Below, in pieces: positions 31,246 to 37,302 of a stretch of 64,000 nt of DNA. The position numbers were made by a program, and so were the translations under genes. The notes beneath the pieces are model-generated. The model did no database searches. It worked only from the letters and a program-made list of their open reading frames with translations, and had not been told where the DNA came from. Numbering within the stretch: position 1 is the first letter of the stretch; each line of letters starts with the position of its first letter. The DNA is from Thecamonas trahens ATCC 50062 (Eukaryota > Protista > Apusomonadida), in the NCBI RefSeq assembly GCF_000142905.1, contig NW_013657671.1, positions 248,001-312,000 of the forward strand, read 5' to 3'.

Positions 31246-34200
31246 CTAATTGGGGTGGCCGTGACGCGCGGCTCTTGCCGCCTCGCGGCGGCGCTTCTTG
31301 GCCTCACGCTCGCGCTGGCGCTGATTGTCTCGCTGCGCCTTTTGCACGGCCAAGACAAAGTCGAGGAACTTACCGCAGAACTCCTGAGCCTTGACCTTGG
31401 CAGGGCTCTCGCCGTACGCTTTGGCGGTCTTGGCGTACGTCGTCTTGATGGCGGCGATTGAGTTGTGCATGTCAGCCAGCGCGGCGTTGGCGCCCTCGGC
31501 AAAGACCCCCATGACCTCGACAAAGCGGTCGGTTGGGGCTACAAGCTCCAGCTCCCGACCAATAACTTTGAGCGCAACAGTGAGTTCGGTCACCTGAGCC
31601 TCCAGCAGCTCGAGCGAGTAGCGCGCACCTTGCTCGACGTGGCTAAGATCCTCGACGAAGCAAAGCACGTTTGGGTGCTTAGTAGCGAGAAAATCGACGA
31701 GAACATGCAGCAGCGTCGTTCGGTTGTCCTGCGACTTGGTGTCGCGTAGCTTGTTAAGAAACGAGAGCCGGAAGCCAAGCGATGGGTACCCGTTCATAAA
31801 GTTGCCAACAGCGAGGACAAGCTCCAGGACCTTACTTAGGGCCTGAGACTCGAGAATGTCGGTGAGCGCGGCCGAGACCATCGTCAGCCCAGTCGTGATG
31901 TCCGTCGACCGCTCCTCAAACTGGAGCTTAGTTCGGATCGACTCTAGCCGTGGCCGCAGCCGGGGCACGTCCATGATGGCCATGACCACCCGCTCCGACT
32001 TGCCCAGAACACCAAGATCGCCGTCGTAGCTAGCCAGCGTCTCGATCTCGTCTGGCGTCGGCAGCTGCTTGAGCAGCCCGCACACCGCGTCCTCGTTCAA
32101 AACACGGGTGTCGAGGTCGAGAATGGCCTCGCGCAGCGCCTCGGGTGGCACCTTGATCTGGGCCATGAGAATGCCGATGGCGTTCGACTTTTTGCCATCG
32201 AGCAGGAGCACCTTTTTGGGCTTGGACGGCGCCGCCGACGCTGCTTGGAGCTTTGGTCGGCTCGAGGTGAACAGTGACTCGAGCTGCTCGTAGTCGAGCG
32301 TCCACTTTTCCGGATGCATGCTCTCAAACACTGTGCCGCGGACTTGTGCCGGTTTGAGCTTGGTCCAGTGCAGTTTCTTCATCGGCAACCGCGGCTTCCG
32401 CAAGGCGGCACCGCGCCCGAGACCAGCGCCGGGTGGGGGCGGAGGGCGCGGACCACCAGGCGGTGGTGGCGGCGGTGGTCCTCTTCCTCCTCCAGGCGGC
32501 GGTGGAGGCGGCGGTGGGCCTCGTCCGGGCGGCGGCGGTGGCGGTGGTGGACCACCTGTCAACACGCCAGCTCCGCCGGCGCGCCTCCCATCAACGTGGG
32601 TTACCGCAAATGACGCCGCCATCCGACGCTTGACAATGATCCTTCGCACGCCGAGGCGGAACCTCACCCGCGCAGCTTTGAGCCGCGAGTCGGCATCAAT
32701 GTCAAGCATAGCCGCCTTTTTGAGCGTGGCTGCTACCTTGCGGGATAGCCGGGTGATCTCGAGCGAGTAGTGCTCCACAGCCTTGGCCGCCCGCCGCGCC
32801 TCGGCCTTGAGGCGGGCCTCATACATTGACACGGCTGCCCGCTGTGCGTCGCGGGCCTGCTGTCGGATTGCGGCAACGTTCGCCGCATGCACATCCAAGG
32901 CGTGGGCCACCTCGGGGCGTGTCGACTCGAGGTCAGACGCCCGCTTCAAGCTGGCAGCAAGCTCGTCCTCAAGCGTGCAAACGCGGTTGACCAGGCCATC
33001 GACATACGCGCGGGTATGGGTGGACGCCTGCATTCGCAGCGTCCGTGGTACGGTGGTGCCAGGCAACTCGTTGATCTCCGCCAGGTAGCCCATTGCTGCT
33101 GTCAGCGCCGGATGGCCTTCGTCCCGCAGCGGTTGTGCGCATGTTGCAAGCTCGTCTGCAGTAGGCACGTCGACCATGCGCGCAAGACGCTCGGCCAGCA
33201 GCGGCCAGCTGGCTTCTGCAAGGCTTCCCAGCGTCGGCAGGCTAACCAACAACTGCATAATCGCAACAAAGGCATGGTATGCTCGCTGCGATCCGACCCG
33301 TAGATGCTCGGCAAGAAACTGGGCCATGGCACTCGGCGACCTCATGTCGACGCCATGCATGACCAGCGCGGCGCCGTCGGCAGCGGCCTGCTCGCGAAAC
33401 GCCACCAGTGCGTCGGCAGCGTCGCCGTAGGCCTCGGTATCGTCCTCAAACGCATTCAAGGCCGCGCCGAGGCCGTGGGCCATCCACTCTTCTCGGAGCG
33501 CGGCGCGAGCGTCGGCATCACCCAGTCCGTCAAGCACCGCGTTGAGCAGCTGAAGCGCCAGTCGCGCCAGCTCAAAGTCGCTATTGGCACTTCCCACGAG
33601 GCCCAGCACATGCTTGAATCGGTACGGGTAGCGCCAGTCCTGTGCCACCTGCTCAAACGCACGCAAGTGTGCGTGCGCGTTTGCGGACGGCTCGCGCCCC
33701 ACCCACGCGAGCAGAACTTGCAACAGCGGCTCACGGAGTGCTGGCAACGGCCAGCGCAAGAGGCTGACAATCGCGCCCCGCGCGGAGCCATGGCGCTCGA
33801 CAACGTCGAAATGCTGTGGCGATACAGCCAACAGCTCGGCAAGCGAGTGTGCAACGTTTGCGACGCTGGCTTGCTCCGGTGGGGTGAGCTTGGGCGCTCG
33901 CGACGCCATGACTAGGTTCTCCACAATGGCGTCAAGCCCGCCACCATCGTCCAGCTCTGCGGCAAAGGATGCTCCGCCGGCGCGGAGCGCCCGGCGTAGT
34001 GCCTCATGAGAGAGCGATTCATCGCCCAGCTTGAGCATGGTTGCAAAGTACTGCGGTGCCTTGTAGAGCTCGACGTCCGATCCGCTCGACGAGCCAGGCT
34101 CGGGCTCCGACGACGGAGATGCGACCCGCGGCGACTCGCCGGGTGTGGCCGCCGGTGTGCTGAGCGGCGTTACTGATCCGGAGAACGAGAACGAGGCATG

Positions 34201-37200: not shown

Positions 37201-37302
37201 CCGCGCGAGCGTCCCCAGCGCGACCCGCACCGCAGTTCCGCTCCACTGCGCACCCGCCCGCGGTGGATGGGCCTTGCGGAGCGAGTGTGGTACGTGCTCC
37301 AT
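31246..37302 (-). CDS. Formin with N-terminal CAP-Gly domain (CAP-Gly - coiled coil - GBD/FH3-like - FH1 - FH2)
   Basis: Single 2018-aa ORF. CAP-Gly [38 protein letters not shown]. Poly-Pro FH1. FH2 motifs [37 protein letters not shown], TTLLH. Confidence 0.92.
   Translation of the reverse strand: [2018 protein letters not shown]

Follow-up and report, generated by a model that had tools for sequence, protein, structure and literature searches.

Proteins of the CLIP-170 family have tandem CAP-Gly domains, a long coiled coil, C-terminal zinc knuckles and an ETF tail. CLIP-170 and the formin mDia1, two separate animal proteins, reportedly cooperate, as Henty-Ridilla et al. are said to have described in Science in 2016. 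Microtubules are also bound by some formins, among them Cappuccino, FHDC1 and AtFH4 of plants. Spectraplakins and the cross-linkers of the GAS2 family join actin and microtubules as single chains, binding pre-formed filaments via CH domains. Here we describe the gene AMSG_02330 of Thecamonas trahens, found in a window of 64,000 nucleotides (nt) that corresponds to C9:248001-312000, that is, positions 248001-312000 of contig C9, of the 28.7-Mb assembly; other positions without a contig name refer to this window. AMSG_02330 is a real, intact gene in which a CAP-Gly domain is joined to a complete formin in one frame.

The coding sequence of this CAP-Gly formin occupies positions 31246..37302 of the minus strand. 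According to the list of open reading frames (ORFs) and the translation, it consists of 2018 codons and TAG, starts with ATG and is a single exon as read. Just three codons of the frame are open above the start ATG. The GC content at the three codon positions (GC1/GC2/GC3 approximately 0.75/0.5/0.7) is kept in each block of 100 codons, the linker between the domains included. In a random frame at 65% GC, about 2.5% of codons are stops, and by an arithmetic estimate 1000 stop-free codons are expected at ~1e-11; the long frame therefore is not due to chance.

The CAP-Gly domain (amino acids (aa) 121-184; 36751..36942, minus strand) matches Pfam PF01302 with E 2.7e-21, the score being 75.7 bits against a cut-off of 26.5, and the match covers positions 2-65 of the 65 positions of the model. 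The motif GKHDG is found at aa 157-161 (nt 36820-36834). The same variant of GKNDG is present in the CAP-Gly domain of mouse CLIPR-59 (1whh) and in several other CAP-Gly copies of T. trahens. The groove residues are kept: these are the aromatic residues F142, W147 and Y168/F169, and K158. Sequence matches in the PDB are CLIP4, CEP350, CLIPR-59, CLIP-170 and p150Glued (1e-16 to 1e-12). An AlphaFold2 model built from an alignment of 30 sequences has predicted local distance difference test (pLDDT) values of 93-98 in the core. The best Foldseek matches of this model are CAP-Gly1/2 of CLIP-170 and p150Glued, with template modelling (TM) scores of 0.83-0.96, and among the matches are chains whose structures were determined together with EB1, SLAIN2 and tubulin tails. 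The root-mean-square deviation from CAP-Gly1 of CLIP-170 is 0.7 A, and the fold, as modelled, is canonical. The N-terminal 117 residues (36952..37302, minus strand) are rich in Ala, Leu and Pro and contain no Pfam domain at E<=1.

The second half of the protein has the parts of a formin. Firstly, a Diaphanous FH3/DID-type armadillo region, with the Pfam core at aa 1213-1354 (33241..33666, minus strand), was detected by PF06367 (Drf_FH3; E 2.7e-8; score 34.4 bits, cut-off 27); it can be aligned with the FH3 regions of three T. trahens paralogues, named C31, C22 and C12 below after their contigs. Secondly, FH1 (32428..32556, minus strand; positions from a regular-expression search) contains four polyproline tracts of the profilin-binding type. 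They consist of 8, 8, 7 and 5 Pro (aa 1585-1592, 1596-1603, 1609-1615 and 1620-1624), and the last one ends 10 residues before FH2. At the DNA level FH1 shows up at 32456-32557, where there is a tandem repeat rich in GC. Finally, the FH2 domain (aa 1635-1986; 31345..32400, minus strand) matches PF02181 over positions 5-371 of 372, with E 1.1e-85 and 288.5 bits (cut-off 34.8). Among proteins of solved structure, its best match is mDia1 (E 1.7e-50). In the alignment with mDia1, I1711, the second Ile of NAIGIL (nt 32170-32172), stands under the Ile of the mDia1 segment NLSIFL, and the segment KLRDTKS is identical in the two proteins, DTKS being aa 1854-1857 and Lys1856 being nt 31735-31737. The motif GNFMNG is at aa 1833-1838 (nt 31789-31806). 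The actin-contact Ile is presumably the counterpart of I845 of mDia1 and I1431 of Bni1. Having FH2, the actin-contact Ile and Lys, and FH1, AMSG_02330 is by sequence a member of the formin family.

A sequence-only reading of this DNA had proposed an uninterrupted ORF of 2018 aa, a complete CAP-Gly domain with GKHDG at ~36750-36950, a poly-Pro FH1 at ~32420-32550, and an FH2 domain with the actin-critical Ile (in NAIGI) and Lys (in DTKS). All of these hold. The ORF list, the translation and the coding base pattern throughout the frame agree; 64 of the 65 positions of PF01302 are covered, and the GKHDG motif lies within the match; the four proline runs and both actin-contact residues are where they were placed. 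PF01302 and PF02181 both exceed their curated cut-offs on one protein.

The neighbours of the gene are close. Upstream is a gene with a CENP-S-like histone fold (37449..38252, minus strand; PF15630, 2.9e-10), separated from the 5' end of the formin by 144 nt. Downstream is a convergent ORF with an adenylate/guanylate cyclase domain (28444..31179, plus strand; PF00211, 2.8e-15), whose end lies 67 nt away from the stop codon of the formin. These genes are unrelated to the formin, and they leave no space for additional exons of AMSG_02330.

Profile searches of the T. trahens genome yielded 19 FH2 matches and 73 matches to PF01302 in ~45 loci. CAP-Gly domains thus are greatly expanded in this organism, and many of them occur as tandem pairs or triplets within long open frames.

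AMSG_02330 is one of five CAP-Gly formins among the 19 T. trahens formins. Three of the other four are encoded in one frame each: the C22 formin (C22:208431-213749; 1773 aa) with two CAP-Gly domains, a partial GBD, FH3 and FH2; the C12 formin (C12:422300-427237; 1646 aa) with CAP-Gly, GBD/FH3 and FH2; and the C48 formin AMSG_08755 (C48:101416-104253; 946 aa) with CAP-Gly and FH2 and no FH3. At the C31 locus (C31:128502-138238), an ORF of 1129 aa with two CAP-Gly domains overlaps by 208 nt, in another frame, with an ORF of 2186 aa containing GBD, FH3 and FH2. These frames could be joined by an intron or through a one-base error, and there are 174 compatible GT-AG pairs at the junction. The C31 formin almost certainly carries CAP-Gly like the other four, and the locus may encode a protein of ~3100 residues. 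Judging by its FH2 strings, this is probably AMSG_07139. With five CAP-Gly formins in one genome, we are dealing with a family rather than with a one-off fusion.

The nearest homologue of AMSG_02330 in a word-indexed search is AMSG_01072 of T. trahens ATCC 50062. In the FH2 tree of all 19 formins, AMSG_02330 and the C31 formin are sisters (support 98/96, 43% identity), and the positions of the other CAP-Gly formins are not settled. The approximately unbiased (AU) test does not reject a tree with all five CAP-Gly formins in one clade (p 0.17). The CAP-Gly domain of AMSG_02330 is nearest to the second CAP-Gly domain of the C31 formin (52-53% identity). As the two proteins are nearest to each other in both FH2 and CAP-Gly, the fusion is older than their duplication. 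Apart from this pairing, the tree built from 40 CAP-Gly domains lacks resolution and does not decide between one fusion and several.

In all five proteins CAP-Gly is N-terminal to FH1-FH2. However, AMSG_02330 has one CAP-Gly domain, whereas the C22 and C31 formins have two. The spacers vary across the family from ~360 to ~2000 residues and are dissimilar in sequence. A partial match to Drf_GBD, covering the DID-side half of the model only, was observed in the C22, C12 and C31 formins and is absent from AMSG_02330.

The combination of domains was also found outside T. trahens. A word-indexed search with AMSG_08755 retrieved a protein of 903 aa with both Pfam domains and 48% identity over 92% of the query. 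It is encoded on contigs from the Tara Oceans marine metagenomes, at 388-3099 of one and 415-3126 of another, and its identity to AMSG_08755 is 48-53%. The gene adjacent to it encodes a TPR protein, whose best T. trahens match directly adjoins the C48 formin, although in a different orientation. Because this neighbour is kept, the Tara protein is an orthologue of AMSG_08755 from an uncultured marine relative, and the combination of CAP-Gly with FH2 thus has been maintained across species. In an exhaustive phmmer search with AMSG_08755 against 1.84 billion representative proteins, AMSG_08755 itself and the Tara orthologue ranked first. Among the best 150 matches of that search, 16 others with several matching stretches were scanned, and these contained FH2 or CAP-Gly alone, never both; such a search is blind to fusions that are distant in both domains, and AMSG_02330 itself is not among the best 150. 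No orthologue of AMSG_02330 outside T. trahens was found by word-indexed searches with the full-length protein or with FH2 only. A scan of JGI metagenomes with an FH2 profile of AMSG_02330 and the C31 formin yielded five distant loci, none with CAP-Gly, and the ESM Atlas yielded ordinary Diaphanous-related formin (Drf) clusters only (score 0.88). The CAP-Gly+FH2 architecture thus appears rare in sequence collections: a single relative, that of AMSG_08755, was found among the scanned matches.

The gene itself has been noticed before. In the supplementary alignment that Pruyne published in 2017 (PMC5628938), the sequence labelled 'Tt AMSG_02330' has FH2 strings identical, in every letter, to those encoded in the window, and the S1 table of that survey lists AMSG_02330 as a formin of subtype 'n.d.' (PMC5628938). 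The term CAP-Gly does not occur in the main text or supplements of the survey (PMC5628938). Neither CAP-Gly with FH2 or formin nor CAP-Gly with Thecamonas is described as a combination in the searchable full-text literature or in the readable formin surveys. Hence the protein is already in the databases and in one formin survey, and its CAP-Gly architecture is undescribed in the searchable literature. The sequence-only reading knew of no such architecture among the standard animal, fungal or plant formin classes. Indeed, it is not in the formin surveys; on the other hand, the gene was listed already (Pruyne 2017), and it is one of five in its genome.

The region between CAP-Gly and the formin half consists of a spacer and a hinge. 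The spacer (aa ~200-996; 34315..36705, minus strand), defined by composition and coding signal, contains much Ala, Leu, Glu and Arg but little Pro or Gly. Hydrophobic periodicity of 3.5 residues at aa 200-1000 has z-scores of 0.6 to -0.8 relative to shuffles if Ala is counted and a weak 2.3 without Ala, while the control FH3 and FH2 regions have z-scores of 2.6-4.9. The single-sequence AlphaFold2 model of aa 1-1160 has a mean pLDDT of 46.5, with long helices at 388-737 and 791-996 (pLDDT ~50-78). This model is poor, with the CAP-Gly region misfolded, and gives only a weak hint of helicity. No homologue of the spacer was found in the PDB, and it does not resemble the corresponding regions of the paralogous CAP-Gly formins. 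It is probably helical and fast-evolving. The coiled coil of ~800 aa that had been proposed here is not supported by these data, as there is neither significant heptad periodicity nor a homologue. The spacer is followed by a Ser/Thr/Pro-rich hinge (aa ~1000-1075; 34078..34305, minus strand), probably disordered as seen from the translation and non-helical in the AlphaFold2 model. A charged helical stretch predicted from the translation (aa ~1480-1565; 32608..32865, minus strand; no Pro and one Gly in 86 residues) precedes FH1. By its position it may correspond to the dimerisation/coiled-coil segment of Drf proteins.

The regulatory parts of Drf proteins were sought as well. No match to the GBD model PF06371 and none to the DAD model PF06345 was observed in AMSG_02330 at E<=1. 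Of the helical region previously described as GBD/FH3-like, FH3 (PF06367, as above) is thus confirmed and GBD is not. The C-terminal tail (aa 1987-2018; 31249..31344, minus strand) is short and basic, ends with HGHPN, and has neither a DAD motif nor an EEY/F ending. Autoinhibition of the CLIP-170 type, with CAP-Gly bound to the protein's own tail, is rejected, as this C-terminus contains no aromatic or acidic motif. Since neither GBD nor DAD was detected, activity is probably controlled by localisation, not by Rho-relieved autoinhibition.

The alpha-tubulin of T. trahens ends with DYVEEY, and given this -VEEY terminus, microtubule binding by the CAP-Gly domain of AMSG_02330 is plausible. The beta-tubulin (C38:232462-235827) ends with DDFGDYEPEY, an acidic tail with terminal Tyr, and might be a CAP-Gly ligand too.

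The balance of these observations tips slightly towards coupling of microtubules to actin by a single chain. That the usual Rho-GTPase-binding head of a formin has been replaced, within a protein of 2018 residues, by CAP-Gly on a helical spacer of ~800 residues and a disordered hinge is likewise favoured by us, with some reserve. The following scheme may be suggested. FH2 domains act as dimers, and therefore an AMSG_02330 dimer would have two long arms, each bearing a CAP-Gly head. These heads would dock on the -EEY of tyrosinated alpha-tubulin and perhaps on the tails of other plus-end-tracking proteins (+TIPs). Together with profilin, FH1-FH2 would nucleate actin filaments and elongate them, either at microtubules or along them. 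Polymerisation of actin from microtubule plus ends, as proposed in the sequence-only reading, would be one form of this activity. In the cell, actin assembly would be tied to the microtubular roots of T. trahens, which glides and forms pseudopodia.

Several observations weigh against this scheme. The last visible exon of the EB1 homologue (C3:575744-578833, frame 1423-1647) ends with DDVEDEAVEA and has no terminal EEY/F; a further 3' exon of this gene is possible, but with the tail as read, classic EB-dependent tip tracking is doubtful. An ending of this kind is unusual for an EB protein. In the CAP-Gly domain itself, the family-consensus Arg of 'HGxFVRP' is replaced by Asp179, and by Asn in the C31 formin. 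We take this position to be that of the basic residue of p150Glued that touches acidic tails, and the replacement could weaken binding to such tails. CAP-Gly is present only once, and basic Ser-rich flanks are not evident around it. The spacer is without significant heptad signal and is not conserved between the paralogues. Finally, with ~45 CAP-Gly loci in the genome, not every CAP-Gly domain of T. trahens need bind tubulin.

The last point leads to another explanation, in which CAP-Gly is a general module for docking on C-terminal peptides. AMSG_02330 would then have a partner other than tubulin, for instance a different protein with an aromatic or acidic motif at its end, and would be a targeted actin nucleator rather than a coupler. 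The huge expansion of CAP-Gly, the variability of the motif GK[NH][DNS]G among the T. trahens copies and Asp179 all fit this explanation, and, according to the titles of the PDB entries 7owc and 7owd, the CAP-Gly domain of CYLD binds ubiquitin. However, in both sequence and fold the domain is nearest to CLIP-170, CLIPR-59 and p150Glued, which bind tubulin or EB, and not to CYLD; moreover, the groove retains F142, W147, K158 and Y168/F169, and alpha-tubulin does provide -EEY. We therefore consider a non-tubulin partner rather unlikely, though worth keeping in mind.

It is also conceivable that AMSG_02330 acts mainly on microtubules, bundling or stabilising the roots, with CAP-Gly adding affinity and actin assembly being secondary. 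It would then resemble mDia and INF2, whose FH2 regions stabilise microtubules. Two papers state that many formins bind and stabilise microtubules via FH2 and other motifs (PMC5628938; PMC3444772), and the FH2 domain of AMSG_02330 is nearest to that of mDia1. We regard this as improbable, since four long proline tracts in FH1 and the kept actin-contact Ile and Lys argue for retained actin polymerase activity. Least probable of all, indeed very much so, are separate products of the continuous frame (through an internal start of transcription or translation, or through processing): the spacer is fast-evolving and low in complexity, as might be expected in that case, but the domains are connected by ~1000 stop-free codons with the coding base pattern, the joined layout recurs in three other single frames and in the orthologue of another organism, and unrelated genes adjoin both ends.

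Single-chain coupling, the explanation we favour for AMSG_02330, can be extended to the whole family. The five CAP-Gly formins (5/19 T. trahens formins) would then be single-chain 'CLIP-formins' of apusomonads that nucleate actin from tyrosinated microtubules and form a lineage-specific coupling system. They may descend from a single ancestral fusion, as a single clade is compatible with the AU test. This broader proposal is tentative, and we would not at present bet on it. The fivefold occurrence of the design in T. trahens and its retention in a relative from the sea argue that it is used and did not arise by accident in annotation.

Microtubules and actin are usually coupled by separate proteins that need to meet, and a single-chain version would provide a simple, testable model. 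For cell biologists, a CAP-Gly formin would be a ready-made tool. It also gives a view of cytoskeletal wiring in apusomonads, which are sister to animals plus fungi. Formins have been classified by their FH2 and Drf domains, and in the published schemes the N-terminal CAP-Gly module was missed.

The surroundings of the gene deserve a brief description. The downstream ORF with the cyclase domain starts with a CCG/15-nt repeat (28453-28598) and contains 39-nt repeats (28720-29257) encoding a Cys-rich unit similar to DKDDCGVCGGNNA. Islands of lower GC content (0.44-0.55 as compared to ~0.65) are situated at 22001-24000, 4001-8000, 48001-50000 and 60001-62000 and presumably lie in intergenic regions or introns. 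Tracts rich in G and in C were observed at 49290-49383 and 49997-50058. An ORF at 58289-60658 (plus strand) is aprataxin-like, with FHA, HIT/DcpS_C and zf-C2HE domains. The other genes of the window are ordinary: they encode a HECT ligase, a kinase, a RabGAP-TBC protein, a GH38 mannosidase, HscB and TauE.

Compared with known systems, AMSG_02330 shares FH3/DID, FH1 and FH2, in that order, with the Diaphanous-related formins mDia1 and DAAM1. It differs from them by ~1070 additional N-terminal residues that include CAP-Gly, and, with no GBD or DAD detected, it falls outside the canonical Diaphanous-related formins. In animals, CLIP-170 and mDia1 are two proteins that work together (PMC2606960). 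AMSG_02330 likewise unites CAP-Gly with FH1-FH2 of the Diaphanous type; however, it does so in one polypeptide instead of two interacting proteins, and by analogy it would work as a covalent version of the CLIP-170/mDia1 partnership. Still, it is not a member of the CLIP-170 family, as it has a single CAP-Gly domain, no zinc knuckles, no ETF tail and no demonstrable coiled coil. mDia and INF2 are formins linked to microtubules (PMC5628938). The microtubule-binding formins use FH2, C-terminal or lineage-specific regions for this purpose, and CAP-Gly was found in none of them in the literature. Finally, where spectraplakins and the GAS2 family have CH domains, AMSG_02330 carries filament-building machinery instead.

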